DNA of 63,281 nucleotides, counting the filler, from Guillardia theta CCMP2712 (taxonomy: Eukaryota; Protista; Cryptophyta), in assembly GCF_000315625.1 (NCBI RefSeq). It is 5 parts of 5 records of this genome, joined end to end, with 100 filler letters (N's around TTAATTAATTAA, not from the genome) between each part and the next. Parts side by side here need not be neighbours in the genome. Positions count along the whole stretch, not along the records: positions 1 to 22,404 come from NW_005434567.1; 4 more parts are not named here. One strand, 5' to 3'. A model generated the notes under the pieces. It made no database searches and was not told the origin of the DNA. It worked only from the letters and a program-made list of their open reading frames with translations. The translations under genes and the position numbers were made by a program. Of the stretch, positions 4,751 to 19,807 are shown one piece after another. How positions within the stretch are numbered: position 1 is the stretch's first letter; each line of letters starts with the position of its first letter.

Positions 4751-5038
4751 ACATGCCTCGTAGCTAGGAAGCGGCTGTTGGCAAATCAAGGACACGCGAG
4801 GCGCGGCTCGCAGCTAGGAAATGGCTTGAGGCCTCCGCTGTTACCTTGTGGTTGTTTCAATAGCAAAGGGAAGAGAAGAGATATAGAGATCAGGGTGTGT
4901 GTGTGTAGAGGGGTAGCTGCTTGTTGGACTCGGCTCCTGTGATCATGTGATAAGCCTGTTGTTTGAAAGGTTTGTTGCTCTTCGAGGTCAAATCGCTCTG
5001 GTTGATATTGTCTCATGGTAAGCTCGGATTTCAAAGGA

Positions 5039-8000
5039 TGTCTCTTGCTGAACCCTTGTGCTTGCACGTGCAGGAACCCATCGATAATTCCGAACGACCA
5101 AGGAAGAAGATCCGTGGGAGGGATCGCTCAGGTAATGACTACCGCGAGTTACCAGCACACGAGGATACAGACAAAGGAGGTCGAGGATCCGCAGAAGTCG
5201 AGGCGGCACTGCATGACCTTTATAGAAACGTTCCAAGAAGCATGCGGCTCCTCTTCGGCTCCAGAGTAGCAGTTAACGGAATTGTACCAGACACGATGAT
5301 GCGAGATACGCTGGCAGCCATGGCAGAATATCGAGATAAAAGAATACAGCAGGCAGGGCTGAGAATACTGGGAAAGATTTCATGGGAAGATGAAACAGTA
5401 AAGATGTTTAGATCCAAAGCAGGATTTGAAGCGGTGATAATGGCGATTCGGGAGCACGAGCAAGATAACTGGCTTCAAGAAGCCGGGTTCGAAGTTGTCC
5501 GGGGCCTCCTCGACCATGCGATGAATCACTGCAGGCACAGTTACGGCGATGAGAACAAGATTGAGATGAGGAGGGAGATCCGAGCTGCAGGATGCGTCGA
5601 TGCAGCCATTGGCGCCATGAGGAAGCATGCTGCCAATCTGAGTTTACAAGAAACCGCATTGGTTGTGCTGGCAGGTGTCATGCAGGATGATGAAGGGAGA
5701 AGAGAGGTTCTTGCGGCGGGAGGAGAGAAGGCGGTCTTGGATGCCATGCGCACGTGCAAGACAGACGCACCAGTCCTGCATGCCGCCCTGGAGGTGCTCG
5801 TGATGATCTCCCAAGTGCAACAAGGTCGAAGAGAGGTCCTTGCGGCGGGAGGAGAGAAGGCGGTCTTGGAGGCCATGCAGGAGCACAAGGATGACGAGGA
5901 AGTGCGCACGACGGGGCTGAAAGTGATAAGGAGCTTGTTAGAGGAGGAGGAGGGGAGGAGGGCGATGCTCGCAGCCGGAGTGGTCGAGCTGGTGAAGTCA
6001 ACTCTCAAGTTCAGAGAAAATAGTTGCGCTCGTGATCAGGCCTTAGCGGTACTCAGCTGCCTTGCAACGGACAAGGTCCATGGGCCCAACAAGAGTGTCG
6101 AAGCGGTCACGGGGGCTATGCGAGGGCACCAGGAGGACTTGAGCGTGCAGAGAGCCGGAATGGAGAGCTTGATGACGATGAGTAGCATGCAGGGGCTCGA
6201 TGCGGTATTTGCAGCCATGCATCATCACATACAAGATGAGTGGATACAAGAAGCGGGGCTTGAACTTGTCTGTGACCTCCTCTACCATGCCACGCTCACC
6301 ATTAAAATGTGGGACAGGCACGGCTACGACGATGAGAACGAGGCAATAGAGATGAGGAGGGAGATCCGAGCTGCAGGATGCGTCGATGCAGCCATTGGCG
6401 CCATGAGGAAGCATGCTGCCAATCTGAGTTTACAAGAAACCGCATTGGTTGTGCTGGCAGGTGTCATGCAGGATGATGAAGGGAGAAGAGAGGTTCTTGC
6501 GGCGGGAGGAGAGAAGGCGGTCTTGGATGCCATGCGCACGTGCAAGACAGACGCACCAGTCCTGCATGCCGCCCTGGAGGTGCTCGTGATGATCTCCCAA
6601 GTGCAACAAGGTCGAAGAGAGGTCCTTGCGGCGGGAGGAGAGAAGGCGGTCTTGGAGGCCATGCAGGAGCACAAGGATGACGAGGAAGTGCGCACGACGG
6701 GGCTGAAAGTGATAAGGAGCTTGTTAGAGGAGGAGGAGGGGAGGAGGGCGATGCTCGCAGCCGGAGTGGTCGAGCTGGTGAAGTCAACTCTCAAGTTCAG
6801 AGAAAATAGTTGCGCTCGTGATCAGGCCTTAGCGGTACTCAGCTGCCTTGCAACGGACAAGGTCCATGGGCCCAACAAGAGTGTCGAAGCGGTCACGGGG
6901 GCTATGCGAGGGCACCAGGAGGACTTGAGCGTGCAGAGAGCCGGAATGGAGAGCTTGATGACGATGAGTAGCATGCAGGGGCTCGATGCGGTATTTGCAG
7001 CCATGCATCATCACATACAAGATGAGTGGATACAAGAAGCGGGGCTTGAACTTGTCTGTGACCTCCTCTACCATGCCACGCTCACCATTAAAATGTGGGA
7101 CAGGCACGGCTACGACGATGAGAACGAGGCAATAGAGATGAGGAGGGAGATCCGAGCTGCAGGATGCGTCGATGCAGCCATTGGCGCCATGAGGAAGCAT
7201 GCTGCCAATCTGAGTTTACAAGAAACCGCATTGGTTGTGCTGGCAGGTGTCATGCAGGATGATGAAGGGAGAAGAGAGGTTCTTGCGGCGGGAGGAGAGA
7301 AGGCGGTCTTGGATGCCATGCGCACGTGCAAGACAGACGCACCAGTCCTGCATGCCGCCCTGGAGGTGCTCGTGATGATCTCCCAAGTGCAACAAGGTCG
7401 AAGAGAGGTCCTTGCGGCGGGAGGAGAGAAGACGGTCTTGGAGGCCATGCAGGAGCACAAGGATGACGAGGAAGTGCGCACGACGGGGCTGAAAGTGATA
7501 AGGAGCTTGTTAGAGGAGGAGGGGGGGAGGAGGGCGATGCTCGCAGCCGGAGTGGTCGAGCTAGTGAAGTCAATCCTGGGGAGTGCCTGGGAGGACTTGA
7601 GCGTACAGGAGGCAGGAATGGAGTGCACGGAGAGTTCTAAGGAACGAGAATTGCTGAAGAGGGATGGGCCAGAGGCAGTGGTGTTAGAGTTTCGAAAGAA
7701 CACGTCAGTTTGCAACGGTCTGATATTCCTGAAATCACATATCATGAAGGGGCAGGAGGAATTGTTGGAGTTATTGGAGGCAGGAGTAGTGGAGGCCATC
7801 GTAGATGCCATGAACGGGCTGAGCAATACCTGGGATTGTGGAGATCTGTTCGACAGGGGGATGGAACTGCTGGGACAGATTTCACACGAAGAAAAGGGAC
7901 GGTACAAGATCCGAGCGGCTGGTGGGATTCAGACAATTTTATCTATTTGCAGCAATGAATCAATCAATTGGAGTTTGAAGACAAAAGGTCTTGAAGTGCT

Positions 8001-10532
8001 CTTAACGATCTCAGAGAATGAAGACGGATGCAAGGAAATCCGAGCAGCTGGAGGCTTGACGAAAATCCTTCTCTTTTTGGATGATGTGCGCCCGTCAGAC
8101 CATCGCTGGCGTCGCATGTTCGAGTGGGGAGAGATTCGTATCATCTTTACATTGATCGGTAGCCTTACATCGGAGGGAAAGTATGACCACAACAATGCCG
8201 AAATCGTTGCGTTAGTATGTGCCATGCGGGAGGACAAGAACGACGATGTTTGTCAGCGGGTCGGTATTGTGGTGATCGAATCGTTGCTGTTGGACTTAGA
8301 TTGCAAAGAAGCGTTTCTTGCGGCGGGAGGAGAGAAGGTGGTCTTGGATGCCATGCGCACGTGCAAGACAGACGCACCAGTCCTGCATGCCGCCCTGGAG
8401 GTGCTCGTGATGATCTCCCAAGTGCAACAAGGTCGAAGAGAGGTCCTTGCGGCGGGAGGAGAGAAGACGGTCTTGGAGGCCATGCAGGAGCACAAGGATG
8501 ACGAGGAAGTGCGCACGACGGGGCTGAAAGTGATAAGGAGCTTGTTAGAGGAGGAGGGGGGGAGGAGGGCGATGCTCGCAGCCGGAGTGGTCAAGGTATT
8601 GCTATCATTCTTGAGTCACAAGCAGAAATATGTGGGAGTTGACGAAAAGACTGAGCTATTGATGCTCCTCGGCTTCATAGCGATCTATCAGAGAAGTCAG
8701 TCAGAAGCACACTTCAAGTTCACCAACAAATATAGCTTGAAGACGATCGAGTCAGTAGTCAAGCTTGAGGCGATCATAGCTGCCATGATTGAGCATAAGG
8801 AACATGTCCAAGTGCAGGCGAGTGGGTTTGAACAAATACAAATGGTTTTGAAGGAAATTGATGGTGGAGGGATGGAGTTCATAACATGTGGAGCGTTTGA
8901 GTTATTGATGGCTGCCATGAGGAAAAGTGAAGAAAGCTCAGAGTTGAAACGAGCATGTTTGACGACACTAAGTTGGTTGACGTCAGAAGGGCAGGCGCGA
9001 AGGGAGGTCCGTAAAGCAGGATGCATTAAGGCAACATCTCATATCATTCTGGAATGCGCCACCAAGCAACTTTGGGATTTAGGGCTGCAAGTGTTGGCCA
9101 ACTTATGGTTGGATGACGAAGCGCGAAGTGAGATCCTTTCATGTAAAGTGCTCAAGATGCTGGTGAAGGAGATGGTAACTTACGGGAGCCTTTGTAGACC
9201 AGGGTTTACGCTTATCAAACAGATTCTGTGGGACAAGGATGGGTGGAAGAAGTTCCTGGCTGCAGGAGGTGCCAAGGCCATAGTGGTTGCGATGGAGATG
9301 TTTGATTTCCCTCTTGAGTTGTTGAGAATCGAGGAAATGGCAAGAGCGTTCAAGGCAGCAGGGGGAGTGAACTCTGTGCTGTCAGCCTTAACATGTGATT
9401 CCAAAAAGAACCATATGGACATGTTCAAAGTTCTGAGCTGCCTTGCGACGAAGAACGATGGTGCTGAAGCAGACATGCAGGACATCGGCGATGAGCAGAT
9501 TGTAGCAAGTGTGATGCAGGAGCACGGGGCTGATGCAAACGTGCAGGAATCTGGTCTTACCTTGTTCCATGGTATGCTTGGGACCAGCTCAAAGTGGGAA
9601 AAGAAGCCTGAGCGTGCTGTTATACTCAAGTCAGCTGTAGCTGCGGTCATCCGCCATCTGAGTGATGATCGGGTATGGAAGAAAGGACTGATGGTGCTTG
9701 CAAGACTTGCAAGCACCCTGGAAGGCTGGAGAGAGATCCGGGAAGCAGGAGGGTTGAATGCAGTGATGACAGCTATGCAGGATATGGTTCAGGCGGGGCC
9801 AACAGACGCCGGGGGGGGCAAGAATCGCTGTATGTGCTCAGTACAAGAATCTTGCAAGATCAGATTAGCAATGATACCGAAAACAGGAGGTTGTCACAAG
9901 GATTGGAAACACTTGGCATCTTTGCGAATTCAAAGGAAGGAAGTAGGGATGTTTGGGCAGCAGAAGGTGTTCAGTGTGCTTTGGCTGCGATGTTCAAGTT
10001 CATTTACAACCGCGAAGTGCAGAGTCAATCGCTGTCTTTGCTACTAAACTTGCTGCAAGAAGAATGCCAAGTGTGTGACTTCATAGCAATGGGAGGGGTC
10101 AAGGCGTTGTTGACCGCCATGCGAACATGCCGACCACAGTCAAACTCTCATGCGATGGAAAGTTGGGTCAAACTTTTGAGACAAGTCTCGCAGGTCAAGG
10201 AGGGGCGGAGGGAGATCCGGGCAGCGGAAGGGGTGAAGCAGATTGTCCATGTGATCCAAACGTGCGAGCACCTTCCTTGGGTTGGATCGATACAGAAAGC
10301 TGGGATGAGGATACTTGGGAATATTGGGAAAGACGAGGAGGGACGAAGTGAGATAATAGCTGCAGGCGAGATCCTGGATTCTGACGATTTCCTCTCTTCA
10401 TGTGGAAGCATGCAAAGTCTTAAACTAGAGCGCACCCCAAAAGACGAACTGGCCGAACTGAAATCCTTGAGAAAGAACCGAAAGCCTAGGCGCTGGAAAT
10501 TTGCACGATGTGCAAGAAGCTTCGACCACTAA
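5039..10532 (+). CDS. Large armadillo/HEAT-repeat protein, apparently intronless, with a frame break near 9811-9818
   Basis: ~43-aa helical repeats (GRREVLAAGGEKAVLxAMxxH...VQxxGLxVL) run through ORF 4963-10047. The same repeat pattern continues in ORF 9675-10532 after a G8 run. Confidence 0.85.
5563..7573 (+). repeat. 786-bp (262-aa) near-identical tandem repeat, about 2.6 units, plus a partial copy at ~8316-8592
   Basis: GAGATGAGGAGGGAGATCC starts at 5563, 6349 and 7135. Identical antisense ORFs in the track are offset by 786 bp. Confidence 0.95.
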
Positions 10533-11473
10533 GGACCAGACCTTGCACATCAACGAGAGCTTGCTATCAAGTGCTTGCATGATTAATATGGACATGGGGC
10601 CTTGACTTGAGCCGCGATTGCCTCCGATATTCAACAAACAAGTGTTTACTACTGCCATGGGAGTGTCAGCCACTTCCATCGAAGTTCCGCCTAAGAACAT
10701 ACACCATCTCAGCTTGCCACTACTCCCACCCTATCCCCTCCCTTGTACAGCGCCGCATCACAAGTGCCGGAGCGTCATATGAATCTATGTTCACTCAGCG
10801 GCACCCTGTCATCGATGCTCCTGCTGCTTTGCTCTCAGCTCCTGCTCCTACCTGCCTTTGATTGTCATGCACCGGAAATACAGTTCTGATGCACTGCTGC
10901 CTTGTCCACCATGTCCTTGGGACAAGCAGAGCACGTGTACCCGCAATATGGGTACAGAGGGGAGAGAGGTTGCTAATAAAGTGTTGACGTTTCAGTCCTC
11001 GAGCTTTGGCGATGTATTGGAATATCTGCAGAATCTAAGGCATCAACGGTGTTTTCTCCACCTCCTTAGTCGGAGGTCTAACCCCATACGTGTGGTCGTC
11101 TGAGGCTTGCCTTCTACCTGCATCCTTGCTTCAGTGTTTTCTGAGTCTTGGAAAGGTGTCCCACAAAAGGTCGATCTACGATCAGTGATGCCTTCGTAAT
11201 GTTTACGACCTCAGAAGTGAGCATGGGAGCGACTCATCGATGGCAAACTGAACGCCCTCCTGATCATATCTCATCTCTCCCCCTCCTCCCTCCACCCTCT
11301 CTAGGCTCAGCTTTTCTTTCCATCCCCCCCCCCTCCCCCTCACTCGCCCTCTCTCTCTACTACNNNNNNNNNNNNNNNNNNNNNNNNNNNNNNNNNNNNN
11401 NNNNNNNNNNNNNNNNNNNNNNNNNNNNNNNNNNNNNNNNNNNNNNNNNNNNNNNNNNNNNNNAGCCTCCTTC

Positions 11474-11603
11474 GGGAGAGGGAGAGGGAGAGGGAGAGGG
11501 AGAGGGAGAGGGAGAGGGAGAGGGAGAGGGAGAGGGAGAGGGAGAGGGAGAGGGAGAGGGAGAGGGAGAGGGAGAGGGAGAGGGAGAGGGAGAGGGAGAG
11601 GGA
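11474..11603. repeat. (GGGAGA)n microsatellite immediately upstream of the NLR ORF
   Basis: Directly visible next to an N gap. Confidence 0.95.
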
Positions 11604-11607
11604 AGAT

Positions 11608-14600
11608 ATGCCTGCCATTGCGCGAGGAATCTGCCATAGCGACAGACTGATCAAAGGCACCGAGAAAGACTTTGATCAACTGGGGCTAACTCTGGATGCC
11701 AGCGGAAGATATGTTCTGAGATACTCAAAGAATGGTCGGTTCTTTGCTCGCTCGATTTGCAATCACCAGATTCTGTGGGAGAGTGATGTGCGGGTAGAAG
11801 CGGTGGATGTAGAAGAGATTGTGAAGGCGATGACGGAACAGAAACAGGCGATTCACATCAACACGGCAACGCATGGGACGAAGGATGGAAAGTTCTCCTG
11901 GGATATGATAGACCCGATCGAGTTTTATTACGAAGACGTCAAAATGGTTGAGGCCATGGAAAGAGATAGCCAAGTTTCCATACACAGGGTGACGTCTCAG
12001 AGCCCGCCGTTTGCTCCGCTCAATGCAAATGTGATAATAAACGCCTGGTGCTATAGTCATCAGTACGACTTTGCTAGCAAGGTTGACCCTGCAACAGGAA
12101 AGATAAAAAGCATATGGTGGGATGACATTCCAAAGCTCTTCCGCCAAAACCTTAGGGTGACGGCCAATGACGACAGCGTATACGATGCTCTGGAAGGATA
12201 TGTCGAAAACAAATGTTCTGCAAGTGATCCTGAAATATATGAGCGAAGTGGGAGGCCTTCCAGTGAGGTCCTTGAGGAATTTTTGGAGAGCGATGAAAAA
12301 CAAGTGTTACTTCTTCTGGGAAATGCAGGAGCAGGCAAGTCGACACTTGCAAAGCGATGGGCAATCATGCTGGGGGGCAGATGGAAGGGGACGACGCAGA
12401 CCTGGTATCCGGTCTTCCTTCATCTTCCGAGCTGCTCTAGTGTGAAGAAATATTTCAAAGAAGTGATCGGTTGTCAGTTCTTGGAGTCTGATTGGAACAC
12501 ATGGATGAGTAGCATTTCACTTTTCTTTGTGCTTGACGCATTCGACGAGATGTCGATCAAGGACAACGTGGTTGAACAAATCTTCAAGGAAGTAAAGTTG
12601 TGCAAACGATGCAAGGCAGTCGTGACGTGTCGAAGTGACTTGCTGAGGGGGAATAGCCGAGCGGAGAGTTTGTTTTGGCCACAGTCGAAAGGTGGGAAGC
12701 ACGATCTGGAGATTGTCTGGTTGTGTCCTCTCAGCTTGTCCGACAAGAATCAACTAGATCAGTACATTGAGCGTCACGCTGCTAAGAGCATCGACAGCTG
12801 GAGCAAAGAAAAGTTTCAGCAGACCTTTGAACTCAAGCCCGAACTTTTGACTGTCGTCAACACACCATACGCGTTGAAGATTTGTCTCGAGATCCTTCCT
12901 AGTATTTTGGACGCCGAACCTCAGAAACACCTTTCTCAATCCATGATATTTCAAGGATACATAGAAGACTGGTTTAGGCGCGAATGGCATAAGCTGAAAG
13001 AATTCGACTTTCTCACGAACCAACGACGCATAACAGGCATGGACGATATGAACTATTTCAGGAAATATTGGGATGCGGCACAAGCTTTGGCGGTTCATAT
13101 GCAAAGAAAAGGCTGTTCGCAACTAACGATTTTTGACAAAGACTGCAACGAATCCCTGGCAAGAAACTCCTTCTGCTTGTCTTTGAGTGAACCCCAGGAG
13201 AAGCAGCTGGGTCTTTATATTCTGAAAGGTTGTCTAGTACAAATAAGGAAGGCATCATCGAACAAAGAAGATACTAGAGAAATCAGTTTCGTCCATGACA
13301 TCTTTCGAAGTTTCTTCCTTGCCAGCTCAATTATGGAAGAGCTCAAAGAGTTGAAAGATTGTGATACCGGGAGCATTCTCGGTCTGCGTATGCTGAACGA
13401 GGATACAGAAACGATCAAGCGTTGTGCTGAACTGTTGACTACCAATGTTGACTGCAAAAAGCGATTGTTCGATATTATAGAAGCTTCGAGACTCCGCTCA
13501 GATTCATTTTCTATCACAGCTTCAGCTAACGCAGCTTCCATCTTGACGGCAGCTCGCGTGCCATTCTCGGGCTTAGACCTTCACGGTGTTCGAATCCCAG
13601 GAGCAGTACTGAGGAATGGAATCTTCCATCGAACCAACTTGAGCAGAGCAGACCTATCCCGTGTGAATGCAGCTCATGCATACTTGTATGAGACTCGACT
13701 GGAACAAGCTCAGCTGAAAGATGCCTACTTTGGCGAGGAAACAATACTGGAATCCCTCGACAGCAATCGAAAGATTCGTTGCGGAAGACTTGGGCCTCTT
13801 GGCAAGCATTGTGCTCTAGCTTATCATGATGGCAGAGTGGATATATGGGACTTAGAACTGAAAACGCTCCGTCACAGCTTCTATCCACAAGTTAGAGACA
13901 TCGTTTTCATGTGTTTTGGGCCTGATGAGAAGACGCTGGCTTTAGAACTTCGCGACTCGTTGGTTGAAGTTTGGGAAGTAGAGACTGGAGAGCTGTTGAG
14001 AAGTTTTCCGGTACAAGGAGCAGAGATTCAAATGATGAGTCTAGGTGATGGCAAGAAAACGTTGACGCTTCACGTTCAAAGCCTTGTTGTGACGCAACTG
14101 GATGTAGTAAATGGGAAGGTCCGTTATGAGATGGCAGTGCCAAGAGGTAGGTTTACGAAGAGATGGTTCGCCATGGACGGGAAGACTTTCTTTCTTTTGA
14201 TGGACGATGGCACTATGGAAGCTTGGGATGTGCAGACAGGGGAAATTCGTTACACGGTTGGTGATGTTGTGGATTTTGATGTTGGCAAGGAAAAAATAGC
14301 TGCGATATTGATTACTTGGGAAGTGAAAGTTTGGGACATCAAGACCGGGCAACCTCTCCATACGATATTGCCGACATCGATGCCTACTGTTAGACCCGAC
14401 TGGAAATACAACTTGCTTTTGGCACCAAATGGAAATACTCTGTTTCTCTTCACTTTGTCTGGGATGCAAGAAATAATGCAAGTGTGGGACGTAGAGACTG
14501 GCGAGATTCGAGGTACCATCAGAACAGCAGATGGAAGCATCGCCGACAAGTTGAGCATCAGTGAGGATGGGAGGACTGTCGCATTTAGAGTCAAAGATGG

Positions 14601-16790
14601 CGGAATAGAAGTGAGAGACGTCGAGTCAGGGGAGCTGCGCCAAATGATAAAGCCACAAGGTGAGGAGATGAAAAGTTTTCAAGTATCTCCTGACGGGACC
14701 GCCCTTCTCTTGCACATGTCAAATGGAAGTATAAAAGTTTGGGACATAAGTAGTGCAATGCTCTGCACTAGTTTTGAATCAGAGGATCGACCAATATCGC
14801 AGTTTTGTTTTCAGTGGGACATTCACGCCGTTGCGTTGCTTTCGGGTAACGTTGTAGAGGTTAGAGACATAAGGACTGGGTCGCTTTCTCGTGCATATCA
14901 CTTGCAGGACGCTATGGATGATGTAGGAGAGTTGAAGTCGGGCACCGATGGATTGATCTTCTGGATTGACAACGTCAATGATCGGCTAGAAGTTTTGGAC
15001 ATCAAGACCGGCGACCTCCATGAGGCACAACTCGATTATGTTTCTGATATAGCACTTGGGTGCAATGGGAGATTTATTGCGTTTAGTTTTGAAGATGGAA
15101 AGATACAAGTGTGGGACGTAGAGACTGCCGAGATTCGAGGTACCATCAGAACAGCAGATGGAGGCATCGCCGACAAGTTGAGCATCAGTGAGGATGGGAG
15201 GACTGTCGCATTTGAAGTCGAAGATGGCGGAATAGAAGTGAGAGACGTCGAATCAGGGGAGCTGCGCCAAATGATAAAGCCACAAGGACAGAAGATCATT
15301 GATATCAAATTTGGACCTCAAGAGAAGTTCTTAGCTTTGAGATCAAACACTGGCAGATTGGAACTTTGGAATGTTGAAACAGGGCAATATCTCAAAGAAT
15401 TGAAAGGAGACTCCGTCCACATCGACGTAGTTTTTGTCGATGGTTCCATCCTGGCATTATCACCGCAGGGGAGAGTAGAAAAGCAAGATTTTCAAACAGG
15501 TCCGCGCCTTCAGACCCTTTCAGAGCAGGGAAGCTCGGTGATCAATGCAATTTTCAGTCCAAATGAAAAGTTTCTTGCTCTATTGCGTGGTGATGATCGT
15601 CAATTGATTGAGGTGTGGGACATCGAAAATGAACAACTTCTGCATCCTCAATCTATTCAAGTAAGTAATGACGATAAAGCAAAGTTGGAATTTGGACCGA
15701 ACGGAGATACAATATTGTGGAGTTTCTTCAATGGGACCCAATTTGTCACAGAAGTTTTTGATACGAAGACAAGGAGGGTTCATCGTACGGGTGTTGCACA
15801 AGACGTTGTGAATGTTCAGGTGAAGAAGGCCATATCTCAACCCATACATGGGAAAATTACATTAGCATATGATGGCAAGAGTATGTGGAGGGTAAATGAG
15901 ACGAGTGAGGACATTGTAGCTGTGTTAGAGAGGCATGCTGCAGCATGTATTAGACATGCTAATGACACTTCATCAGCAGAAGCGAGCGAGCAAGTATCCA
16001 AGGAGCAGACGTTGCCAATCCCGATCCTCCATATGGAAAATCCAAGGAGTCCTTTCAATATCTCTCAGTTCCACGACAGACAGTGAAACTCGCACACTTC
16101 TCGCCAGATCAGAACTCAATCATCTTGCGGCTTTACGACAGAAGCGTCGAAGTTTGGGACTCGAAAGAGCTGAAGCTTCGATATGCCATCAAACCTCAGG
16201 GAGAATGGTTGGTTGCAAACCTGTGGTTTCGTCAAGAGAGCAACAAGCTGGTGTTAATCATGGCTGATGGGAAGGTGGAGGTGAGGGACCTCGGTACAGG
16301 GAAACTTCAGCACATTCTCTGTCCGTTGGCAGGAGGAGAAACCGAAGATTTGCCAAGAACGCCTCTCAATCTGAGTCCTGGGCATGACGGACAAACCATT
16401 TTGATCCAAGGAGAGAAGATCGGGTTAGAGGTTTGGGACATTCAGACAGGAACCCGCCGGCAGGTGCTCGAGGCGCACGATGAAGACTTGATCAGGGACT
16501 TTTGGGTTGGACCTCAGAAATTTCTTCTTACCTCCTCTCTGGATGGCTTCCTGAAGGTTTGGAGGTACTGCGACGACGGGTACTTCCTGCTGAGTTTCGA
16601 TCTCAGTCATCGAGAAAGGTCCCTGGTCTGCAAGGGAGCATCGGTCAGTGAAGACATGATCTCGGAGTCGCAGAAGCGTCTCCTCAAAAGCAAGCAGGCA
16701 ATCATCAAACCTAACAGATGGCTCAATGTTCCTACTGCTTGGGCTGGACCTGTGAACAAGATTCGTAGTCTCCTAGGCTGGCTTGATTAG
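11608..16790 (+). CDS. NLR-like STAND protein: Tox-HDC-like N-terminal domain + NACHT NTPase + pentapeptide repeats + WD40 propellers (continues in ORF 16083-16790 via a frameshift or unresolved intron)
   Basis: Walker A GNAGAGKST (12319), Walker B FVLDAFDEM, sensor VVTCR, NTPYAL and winged-helix FVHDIFRSFF are present. ASANAASIL...FSGLDLHGVRIPGA leads into pentapeptides (TNLSRADLSRVN), then many ...VEVWDVETG WD40 repeats. Confidence 0.9.
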
Positions 16791-16893
16791 TAACAACATA
16801 GTGAATTCAGATTGAATGAATGATTCGATACGGTTTGCTTGATTAGTAACAACACAGTGAATTCAGATTGAATGAATGATTCGATACGGTTTC
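16781..16893 (+). repeat. ~56-bp tandem duplication spanning the NLR stop codon
   Basis: TTGATTAGTAACAACA(T/C)AGTGAATTCAGATTGAATGAATGATTCGATACGGTTT occurs twice. Confidence 0.9.
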
Positions 16894-17040
16894 ATGTGCT
16901 TGTAATGCTGCCAGCGTTGCTCTATCATCTATCACAATTGTGCAATTTTGCGCCATCGTTGTGGCATTCTAGCGTAGACAAAGAATAGCTGTATGTTGAC
17001 AAAATGTGCGATGAATTGACCTACCATTGATCTCTCAGCG

Positions 17041-17170
17041 ATGGCAAGTAGATCAGATCTGTCAGCCATGGCAAGTAGATCAGATCTGTCAGCCATGACA
17101 AGTAGATCAGATCTGTCAGCCATGGCAAGTAGATCAGATCTGTCAGCCATGGCAAGTAGATCAGATCTCT
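17041..17170. repeat. 27-bp minisatellite (ATGGCAAGTAGATCAGATCTGTCAGCC), about 5 copies
   Basis: Directly visible. Confidence 0.95.
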
Positions 17171-17708
17171 GAATCTGTCTTGACACACCTGATGGAAGGC
17201 TGGAATGGGAGAGGATGGCAAAGAAGGAGATACAAGGAGGGAGGAGGCACACGAGCAACAACCGTGAGGGGTTTGTGAAGAAACAGGATGTGGCAAAGAC
17301 TCGATGATTGTTCTATCTCTCTCGGCAACTGTGTTGATTGGATGCAACTGTGTTGATTGGAAGCGGACTAGGTTGCAGCATCAGGAGAGCCTTCGCCGTA
17401 CTGAGCAACATGAATGTGACTGGCGACTGGAGGATGAATTACATCTGATCGAAACATGGAAAAATTGACGGAAACATCGCATCAGCTCTACTGTCAGTGC
17501 TCAACCAACCCTCTCCCGGCAGACTCAACTTGCAAACTTTGCAATGAGCATCCAAGATGTCAAGCGGGTACCGCCGACGCACTCTCGCCTCTCTTAGCAA
17601 GCCTCTTATCCTTCATGTCTCACAGCATTTGTCACTGAGATGAACGCAGATGCTTTATCAACCCTATGATATCTGCATCCTCTTTGAAATTCGACATCAG
17701 AGAGATTG

Positions 17709-17797
17709 AATGTATCTACAATCATGGAGATATGAAGAATGTTTGATCTAGAATGTATCTACAATCATGGAGATATGAAGAATGTTTGATCTAGAAT
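17709..17797. repeat. ~42-bp tandem duplication
   Basis: AATGTATCTACAATCATGGAGATATGAAGAATGTTTGATCTAG occurs twice. Confidence 0.85.
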
Positions 17798-18177: not shown

Positions 18178-18798
18178 GTGTCTCTCCCTCTCCCTGCCCC
18201 CCGGCTGAAGTCTCCCACTACTCTGACTGTATCAGGTCCTGTGGATTTGTTTCTCTCTAGTGCATGCTCGGCCGGCCCATTCTGTGCGCCGCTCGATGGT
18301 CGAGGCCATGCGCATGCAGTAGCAGCTGCCTCTGACGACTTGAGTTGCAGAAGAAGTCGTCGCCGTCCTCATGCGGCTGCCGTCGCTACATCCGCGCGTC
18401 TGCTGCGCATTCGCATCACTGCCATGGAGACATTCATTGCGGGTTGTCGGGGAGATCTCGTTCCGTTATTTTGGAACCGTCAGACACGCAAGCCATGGCG
18501 GAGGTGAGGGGAGCGTGAGGGAGGTGGAGGCGGGGAGGGGAGGAGGAGAGCGACGGATCTTGCGAGGTCGCCATGCATCTGACATGAACATCCGGACACG
18601 ATCCTAGCCGTGCCGAGCTTGCGTTCCTAGATGCTGCCCCTGCATTGACACCGACCCCCCCCCCCGCCCCCCGAGATGCTTCGATAGGAGGCATGCTGTT
18701 ATCATTGCGGGGGGAGGGAGGAGGTAGAGGCTGCTGAGTGATGCTGTGTGACATGCATGAGGTTTCATCCCGTAGATCGTGCGCCCTGCCCTCTTGAC

Positions 18799-19807
18799 AT
18801 GTCTGACAATCGGTTCCAGCTCAGGAGCAGGAGCAAGCGCAGCAAGGATCCGGGGGATTCCGTCGCCCGACCGGACGGGGACGATGGCAAGGACAAGAAT
18901 GTCAAGGACGAGAGCAACAGGGAAGTATTTCCTGTGTACGAGAACTCTCCCGCAACGACAACAGCAGGGATATTCGTGATAGCAGCCGTCTTCTCAGTCT
19001 ATGTCGCGACCATGTACCCTACGGTCCCAGGGGGCGACAGCGGGGAGTTGATAGTGGCAGGGTGTACAGCAGGGCTAGCGCACCCCCCTGGTTATCCTCT
19101 CTTCACCATGCTGGCGATCCTGTTCCACAACATTCCGTTCGGCTCGCCGGCATGGCGGGTTAACTTGCTCTCCGTCTTCCTGTCGACCGGCTGCGCATGG
19201 TTCCAGTTCCACTCGGTTGTGCTGTGGGAGGAATCCCTATCGAAGGACAGAGGAGGGAAAGGAGGGAGGAGGATGTGGGAGTGGACAGTGAGCGTGTGGG
19301 CAGGCGTGCTGACGTCCCTGCTCATGGCGTTCTGCCCTCTGCTGTGGATGTACTCGATCCAGGCTGAAGTGTTCGCCATGAACAACTTCTTCGTTTCCCT
19401 CTTCCTCTACCTCACAGTGAGGTTCTACATCTTCCGTGAGACCAGGATCGCATTCCTGGGATCGTTGGCCATAGGGCTCGGGCTCAGCAACCAGCACACT
19501 CTGATCTTCTACGCCCTCCCCCTGGTCCTCTTCGTGTTCATCACAGGGTTCAGCGTCCTCTGCTCTCCCAAGAACCTCCTCATCCTCGTTGCCTCCGGTC
19601 TTGTCGGTAGATTTATGAGGATGTGCAGGTTGGGAGATTGAGCATATTGAGCAGGCCTCTCCCCCTACGTGTACCTCCCCCTTGCCGGACGGCAAGCAGC
19701 CTTCGGAGCCTGGGGGGAGCTGGATACTGTGGATGGGTTTCTAACTCATTTCCTTCGAAAGGAGGTGAGATGAAGACGGGAGATGCAGTTCTGAAGCATT
19801 GGAGGAT

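Follow-up and report, generated by a model that had tools for sequence, protein, structure and literature searches.

The 63,281-nucleotide stretch of DNA analyzed here (the window) consists of five parts of the genome of the cryptophyte Guillardia theta CCMP2712 (assembly GCF_000315625.1), joined end to end with 100 filler letters between neighboring parts. In its first part (positions 1 to 22,404, from record NW_005434567.1), an open reading frame (ORF) of 1492 amino acids was found on the plus strand at 11608-16086. Judged from its sequence, the encoded protein is an NLR-like STAND NTPase of the NACHT clade that carries a Tox-HDC-like domain at the effector position. Animals, plants, fungi and bacteria share NLR-like STAND proteins as a design for intracellular immunity, and to our knowledge almost nothing has been reported on such proteins in algae with secondary plastids. 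The arrangement of an effector, a NOD module and a repeat region is known; the new element is a Tox-HDC domain at the effector position of a cryptophyte NLR-like family. An earlier note on this DNA had read the protein as an NLR armed with a Tox-HDC-like cysteine peptidase.

The window protein has a tripartite order, with the HDC domain at residues 25-160, the NACHT module at residues 233-347 and beyond, and pentapeptide and WD40 repeats at residues 665-1400 and beyond. All of these parts are encoded on the plus strand. The Tox-HDC-like domain (11680-12087, about 140 residues) starts with a β-meander, which is followed by a Rossmann-like α/β core. Three segments that the earlier note had picked out N-terminal to the NACHT module were located at residues 82-90 (IHINTATHG, 11851-11877), 106-110 (FYYED, 11923-11937) and 142-150 (VIINAWCYS, 12031-12057). 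They contain H89 (codon 11872-11874), which lies in an NT[GA]xHG loop after a strand at residues 81-86, D110 (11935-11937) of an FxxED motif, and C148 (12049-12051) of an AWCxS motif, which comes after a strand at residues 142-146.

The NACHT-type P-loop core was found at 12304-12648, with a Walker A motif GNAGAGKS (residues 238-245, 12319-12342) and a Walker B-like motif LDAFDE (residues 309-314, 12532-12549). The latter is part of the longer stretch FFVLDAFDE at about residues 305-314, which satisfies the pattern hhhhD[GAS]hDE. Three Pfam families matched this core: NACHT with 26.0 bits (E 9.6e-6), just under its cut-off of 26.7, NPHP3_N with 25.5 bits, over its cut-off of 24.8, and nSTAND3 with 25.1 bits, under its cut-off of 27.2. 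By sequence, the NACHT region had no close relative among solved structures. Pentapeptide repeats (PF00805, E 1.7e-7 and 3.8e-5) lie between the NOD module and the propellers at 13600-13731 (residues ~665-708), and the WD40 β-propeller region extends over 13705-15807 (residues ~700-1400), where many WD40-type Pfam families matched with E-values down to 3e-52. These downstream matches agree with the placement of the N-terminal domain at the effector position of a STAND NTPase, as had been claimed.

Tox-HDC (PF15656) was the only Pfam family matched by the N-terminal domain of the window protein (14.0 bits, E 0.061, residues 54-151 against profile positions 3-113 of 130). The expected family was thus the one recovered, with no caspase or CHAT match in the window domain or its paralogs, yet the score of this copy lies under the Pfam cut-off of 21 bits. 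Tox-HDC was also matched by 7 of 11 paralogs, which matched no other family of note, and one of them (L002, on contig C111) passed the cut-off with 23.3 bits. A profile built from the 11 paralogs only was run against 1.84 billion representative proteins, and it recovered 169 proteins at E ≤ 1e-3 and 80 at E ≤ 1e-10. Among these were Pfam-positive Tox-HDC proteins (P0143, 57.3 bits; P0142, 35 bits; P0048, 29.3 bits), and precomputed PF15656 assignments were present on the further matches P0045, P0053, P0009, P0030, P0011 and P0003, the last from Hanusia phi. Alignment of the paralogs to the Pfam-positive bacterial members with hhalign gave a probability of 99.9% and an E-value of 1.5e-33, with the H, D and C in register, which bears out the H/D/C pattern given in the earlier note.

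Zhang et al. 2012 defined Tox-HDC by three motifs, [SGxH], D/N and C (PMC3482391). In the window copy the first of these reads T-A-T-H89-G. The G position is occupied by A in 7% of the homologs and by G in 93%, and the window copy, with A87, belongs to the minority. Residues W57, V68, H89, G90, F106, D110, C148 and S150 are invariant between the window domain and the Pfam-positive members. The predicted conservation of the three central residues was also observed across 100 homologs, where H89, D110 and C148 were kept in 97, 88 and 97 sequences, respectively, and N85, G90, G94, W147, S150 and W57 were each kept in 93-96. The domain is almost certainly related to Tox-HDC at the superfamily level, as far as sequence comparison can tell, and the window copy alone would escape the Pfam call.

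Other searches gave no competing assignment. Word-indexed protein searches with the domain (residues 40-175, or the domain alignment) returned no matches, which is a limit of that method, as the exhaustive profile search gave the 169 proteins mentioned above. A profile search of PDB sequences with the domain gave chance matches only (E ~0.8), PADLOC and NCBIfam gave matches at the level of the P-loop only, and a protein-language-model search for look-alikes returned no named family at a useful score. A phosphatase of the PTP type, which weak DUF442 and dual-specificity-phosphatase rows had brought up, was ruled out, as there is no conserved Arg at the CX5R position after C148. One of the Pfam-positive matches, the metagenomic protein P0048 (697 residues), consists of a Porphyromonas-type peptidyl-arginine deiminase fused to a C-terminal Tox-HDC domain and is possibly a two-enzyme toxin.

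The gene belongs to a family. When the assembly (87.1 Mb, 669 contigs) was searched with the N-terminal 200 amino acids of the protein, 12 loci were found, 11 intact and one frameshifted, all of them intronless and the relatives of the window copy lying on other contigs. The open frames around the family matches ranged from 794 to 2120 amino acids. Exactly the same 12 loci were recovered with the NACHT module as the query. The 11 other loci all aligned to the window protein, ten of them collinearly over ~660-1400 residues at 28-40% identity and the frameshifted copy, on contig C44, over 475 residues. A Walker A motif was present in all 11, about 90 residues past the Cys, and the effector-NOD-repeat layout was kept in the ten paralogs whose alignment starts at the HDC domain. 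The 11 intact HDC domains are 40-56% identical to one another. H89, D110 and C148 are invariant among them, and so are H83, N85, T86, G90, E109, H126, W147 and S150. Together with their conservation in the 100 homologs, such invariance in domains this divergent goes well beyond a chance resemblance. For paralog pairs with unsaturated synonymous divergence (dS), the ratio of nonsynonymous to synonymous divergence (dN/dS) within the domain was 0.21-0.35, and the domain is therefore under purifying selection.

Two members of the family differ from the others. The twelfth, on the minus strand of contig C44 at ~475500-477200, has its frameshift inside the HDC domain, between the positions of query residues 106 and 107, and an open frame of 492 amino acids; it is likely a pseudogene. 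Paralog L024, on contig C118, has an in-frame N-terminal extension of ~490 amino acids before the HDC domain, in which no Pfam match was found.

Outside this genome, the best matches were the transcriptome proteins P0003, P0004 and P0005 of Hanusia phi in EukProt, and the family is transcribed in that species. P0003 carries precomputed Tox-HDC, NACHT (PF05729), pentapeptide and WD40 assignments, so that a search for the same architecture, which the earlier note had called for, did find it elsewhere. A maximum-likelihood tree of the domain grouped the 11 genome copies with two Hanusia sequences in one clade (support 96/97), and the Hanusia sequences were nested among the paralogs. The family therefore expanded before the two cryptophytes diverged. 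As sister to the cryptophyte clade the tree placed two long branches, weakly supported (90/69), and it did not point to a donor lineage.

Beyond the cryptophytes, HDC domains were found as small stand-alone proteins, at the C-terminus of longer proteins and at the N-terminus of STAND NTPases. The last group includes an HDC-NACHT-ankyrin protein on a contig with an IS66 gene (P0045), an HDC-NACHT-HEAT protein (P0042), an HDC-NB-ARC protein with tetratricopeptide repeats (P0030), an HDC-NACHT protein whose gene adjoins RadC (P0011), and five proteins in which HDC precedes AAA_22/NB-ARC and leucine-rich repeats (LRR) (P0053, P0058, P0065, P0070 and P0071). The named sources of HDC proteins were Simkaniaceae and other Chlamydiota metagenome-assembled genomes (MAGs) and one Anaerolineae MAG. 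A locus search with the domain alignment detected two Chlamydiota MAGs, and the domain was present in 5 of 301 sampled Chlamydiota genomes. In GCA_021772275.1, contig JAJFMJ010000020.1 carries at 6001-14107 two Tox-HDC-STAND-LRR genes (1095 and 1179 amino acids) that flank a U-box gene. The eukaryote-like gene set of this contig suggests an intracellular bacterium as its source, and related proteins are labelled Simkaniaceae.

The relatives of the NACHT module are others than those of the HDC domain. The closest proteins to the window NACHT module were NACHT-pentapeptide-WD40 proteins of metagenomes and of Mortierellaceae fungi (23-25% identity), and no Tox-HDC domain turned up in these closest proteins. 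P0011 is the one bacterial HDC protein whose NACHT module is detectably related to that of the window protein (E 1.6e-10). Because the bacterial HDC proteins have other NTPase clades and other sensors, HDC appears, by sequence comparison, to have fused with various STAND NTPases repeatedly and independently, which is how a portable effector module would behave. The earlier note knew of no such domain combination in eukaryotes. This fits the literature searched, in which no paper ties Tox-HDC to STAND NTPases or to eukaryotes, but the combination is not unique, as Tox-HDC-STAND fusions recur in bacteria. A broader scenario is possible, though on the doubtful side: Tox-HDC may be an unrecognised executioner enzyme of NLR/STAND immune switches, common to a eukaryotic alga and to bacteria, above all protist-associated Chlamydiota. 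From such bacteria the cryptophytes would have gained an HDC-STAND module, and the family would have grown into a repertoire of innate immune or cell-death receptors before Guillardia and Hanusia separated.

An AlphaFold2 model of the domain was built with a 100-sequence alignment. The model had a mean predicted local distance difference test (pLDDT) score of 91.9 and a predicted template modelling (pTM) score of 0.89. Two N-terminal β-hairpins precede the α/β core, which runs from a strand (54-59), a helix (65-77) and a second strand (81-86) into the glycine-rich loop with H89. It continues with a helix (104-116) that bears E109 and D110, a strand (122-127), a Pro-rich loop, a strand (142-146), C148 and a final helix (150-158). 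As modelled, C148 stands at a helix start directly after a strand and H89 in a loop after the neighboring element, positions that would each fit an active site. The modelled fold would be a generic Rossmann-like sandwich without specific likeness to solved peptidases. It agrees with the α/β Rossmannoid three-layer fold predicted for Tox-HDC (PMC3482391). That prediction also puts H, D/N and C each at the end of one of three consecutive strands, in a single catalytic cluster; in the model, H89 and C148 follow strands and D110 lies within helix 104-116.

We propose, as the best explanation and with moderate confidence, that this is an effector-position Tox-HDC domain of an NLR-like STAND NTPase, in which propeller sensing and NACHT switching would control a Cys-based enzyme that leads to death or defence. 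By analogy with other STAND and NLR proteins, the WD40 propellers would sense or bind the triggering ligand, and the NACHT module would then exchange its nucleotide and oligomerise. The resulting clustering would turn on the N-terminal HDC domains. C148 is the predicted nucleophile at its helix start, aided by H89 and D110, and the chemistry would be that of a thiol peptidase or of a transglutaminase/deamidase-type enzyme, as proposed in 2012. The enzyme would then damage or modify cellular targets and so cause cell death or a defence signal, if the parallel with known NLRs holds. The parts of this proposal are not equally firm. It is quite probable that the predicted activity of the HDC domain is real, that is, that the domain is catalytic. 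That it is specifically a peptidase is a tentative prediction which we would not assume, and for a role of the family in defence or cell death, argued by analogy, the case is evenly balanced.

Several results weigh against this proposal, including the sub-threshold Pfam score and the A87 substitution of the window copy described above, and they were considered together with three other explanations. The strongest of these, though unlikely, accepts a STAND family with a catalytic HDC domain and takes it for something other than an immune or death receptor: a scaffold in regulation or signalling, or a module that was gained from bacteria by horizontal transfer and retained for a different role in the cell. 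In its favor, the NACHT clade of this genome shows no exchange of the N-terminal domain (12 of 12 loci have HDC), unlike the shuffling in fungal NLRs. All copies are intronless, and there are bacterial relatives, some of them in obligate intracellular Chlamydiota beside a U-box gene. Other properties of the family point back to an NLR-like receptor, namely the multi-copy expansion, the long and variable WD40 arrays, the 95%-identical internal WD40 repeat, the frameshifted paralog and the effector-NOD-repeat layout. Such features are hallmarks of NLR-like conflict systems, though they are not proof.

A second explanation, that HDC is a non-enzymatic adaptor or oligomerisation module which recruits proteins, like Death, CARD and PYD in animal NLRs, draws on the structural comparisons and was judged very unlikely. 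No enzymatic activity of a Tox-HDC protein was found in the literature searched; the sole paper found calls it a prediction, and the activity proposed there is itself worded as 'thiol peptidase or transglutaminase' (PMC3482391). Foldseek with the AlphaFold2 model returned no PDB chain at E ≤ 1e-3. An exhaustive VIA-align comparison with 48,161 chains had a best Z of 6.3, with Rossmann-like neighbors at Z 5-6.3 (isopropylmalate dehydrogenase, MtxX, phosphotransacetylase, Mur-ligase C-domains and SRP GTPases), and a Z below 8 may reflect no more than a widespread arrangement of elements. The shape search of the ESM Atlas gave TM ≤ 0.51, to Mur_ligase_C and similar folds. Moreover, D110 lies in the helix 104-116 of the model, which is not a typical position for a triad residue, as against the strand end predicted by Zhang et al. 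The matches were thus generic α/β sandwiches. What speaks for an enzyme is the character of the most conserved residues, which are polar and reactive (H 97%, C 97%, D 88%, together with N85, S150 and the glycine-rich loop). Their conservation also holds however much the partner domains differ, in stand-alone proteins and at C-terminal toxin-type positions too, which is typical of active sites and not of adaptor surfaces.

The same comparisons bear on the question of a known peptidase fold. No caspase-like chain was among the best 50 of the 48,161 chains in VIA-align or among Foldseek matches at E ≤ 1e-3, and a caspase-like or papain-like fold was rejected, the matches from Foldseek, VIA-align and the ESM Atlas being generic Rossmann-like only. 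The structural part of the peptidase claim therefore found no support, in that no solved peptidase, caspase or CHAT protein matched the AlphaFold2 model significantly.

The remaining explanation concerns the window copy only, and the ends of the gene are at issue. At the 3' end, the assembly breaks the ORF at 16086, and WD40 coding goes on in a different frame in an ORF of 235 amino acids on the plus strand (16083-16790), which encodes further WD40 repeats and probably supplies the C-terminal rest of the protein. The length of an A-run at 16037-16040 differs among data sets. One additional A is present in contigs of two runs, each from a different study, and a third run agrees with the assembly. 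With the extra A, the two ORFs would share one frame, and the break near 16086 may come from a miscounted homopolymer in the assembly or from a real polymorphism. The idea that an intron changes the frame found no support, as no joints were seen and a difference in homopolymer length was found instead. No splice joints were seen across 11608-16086 in mapped reads or contigs, and the gene was therefore taken to be intronless.

At the 5' end, the frame stays open upstream into an assembly gap, and the full open frame has 1593 amino acids. The gap and a microsatellite occupy 11364-11603, with 100 N at 11364-11463 and (GGGAGA)x21.7 at 11474-11603, abutting the ATG. The short basic leader (MKR...) of several paralogs is missing from the window copy and may be hidden by the gap. 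With the frame open through gap and microsatellite, the ATG is a provisional 5' end of the gene. Little RNA speaks directly for this copy: three reads in the ~6% of one RNA-seq run that was read, and a few short contigs of another run that is only presumed to be RNA. The family may be functional and this copy a pseudogene in decay or without expression, which the frame break, the missing leader, the gap and microsatellite at the 5' end, A87 and the scarcity of reads would suit. This is nevertheless very unlikely, given that a stop-free frame of 1492 amino acids is improbable in a dead gene, every invariant residue of the family is intact in this copy, and the extra A of two independent runs would join the frames.

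Tox-HDC was originally described as the C-terminal toxin tip of secreted polymorphic toxins, linked to RHS or caspase, in β/γ-proteobacteria and phages (PMC3482391). The window domain has in common with it the [S/T][G/A]xHG, FxxED and AWCxS motifs and the predicted Rossmann-like fold. Unlike that toxin tip, it lies at the N-terminus of an intracellular eukaryotic protein, in front of a STAND NTPase, and so differs in context and not in homology. NACHT-WD40 proteins of the HET-E/NWD type in fungi, cyanobacteria and elsewhere, and the Mortierellaceae proteins P0156 and P0157, have the same NACHT-pentapeptide-WD40 layout, are multi-copy and contain highly similar internal WD40 repeats. Fungal NACHT-WD40 proteins carry HET, HeLo, patatin, PNP_UDP and similar N-terminal domains. 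Relative to the fungal and metagenomic proteins, the NOD is 23-25% identical, and their NACHT modules start at residues 51-90 (metagenomic) and at ~670-710 (P0156 and P0157).

The bacterial HDC-STAND proteins (P0045, P0042, P0030 and P0011, and P0012, P0053 and P0070 from Simkaniaceae/Chlamydiota) have the same HDC before a STAND NTPase and a repeat sensor, but use other NTPase clades and sensors than the window protein. The PADLOC defence models had no match in them. Bacterial STAND systems armed with peptidases (caspase, CHAT and trypsin) are known (Kaur et al. 2020, PMC7159879), and HDC is absent from the main text of that paper. Their logic is the same, with a putative peptidase at the effector position of an NTP-driven switch, whereas the window domain has no similarity in fold or sequence to caspase or CHAT.

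The locus defines a conserved cryptophyte family with an uncharacterised Cys/His/Asp effector domain. Several unrelated STAND switches, bacterial as well as eukaryotic, carry this domain as their effector, and it is therefore likely a self-contained enzyme that can be activated. Its switch-controlled context offers a practical route to the biochemistry of Tox-HDC, which has been a prediction since 2012, and the family is an entry point to the cell-death and defence pathways of cryptophytes. A structure of HDC would be informative, since the AlphaFold2 model is confident and has no close solved relative.

Within the WD40 region, a direct repeat of 194 nucleotides was found on the plus strand at 14476-14669 (taken as the reference copy) and 15103-15296. 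The two copies are 95% identical and 627 nucleotides apart, which indicates that propeller blades were recently duplicated within the gene or underwent gene conversion. The depth of contigs falls around 15026-15595, as a repeat would give. Just 3' of the NLR-like gene, tandem repeats were found at 16781-17168 and 17708-17797 (56 nucleotides x2, 27 nucleotides x5.2 and 43 nucleotides x2.1), and short contigs of the possible RNA run cover 17041-17300.

The neighboring Pfam matches were exon-like. A TMEM260-like O-mannosyltransferase was matched on the plus strand at 18748-19641 (E 1.9e-35), and a partial match to Peptidase_C26/class-I glutamine amidotransferase was found on the minus strand at 1414-2250 (E 8e-32). 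Both neighbors look like intron-bearing eukaryotic genes, in contrast to the intronless NLR-like gene. The region around the gene is rich in microsatellites, and these together with the eukaryote-type neighbors argue against bacterial contamination. A giant armadillo-repeat (ARM) ORF of 1694 amino acids lies in 4963-10532 on the plus strand (ARM_ARMC5, 3e-33; ARM_LRRK2, 3e-28). It contains two identical internal blocks of ~250 amino acids and a third that differs by one residue and is truncated at the end. Its coding goes on in another frame in an ORF at 9675-10532, which points to an intron, to a frameshift or to faulty assembly of the repeats.

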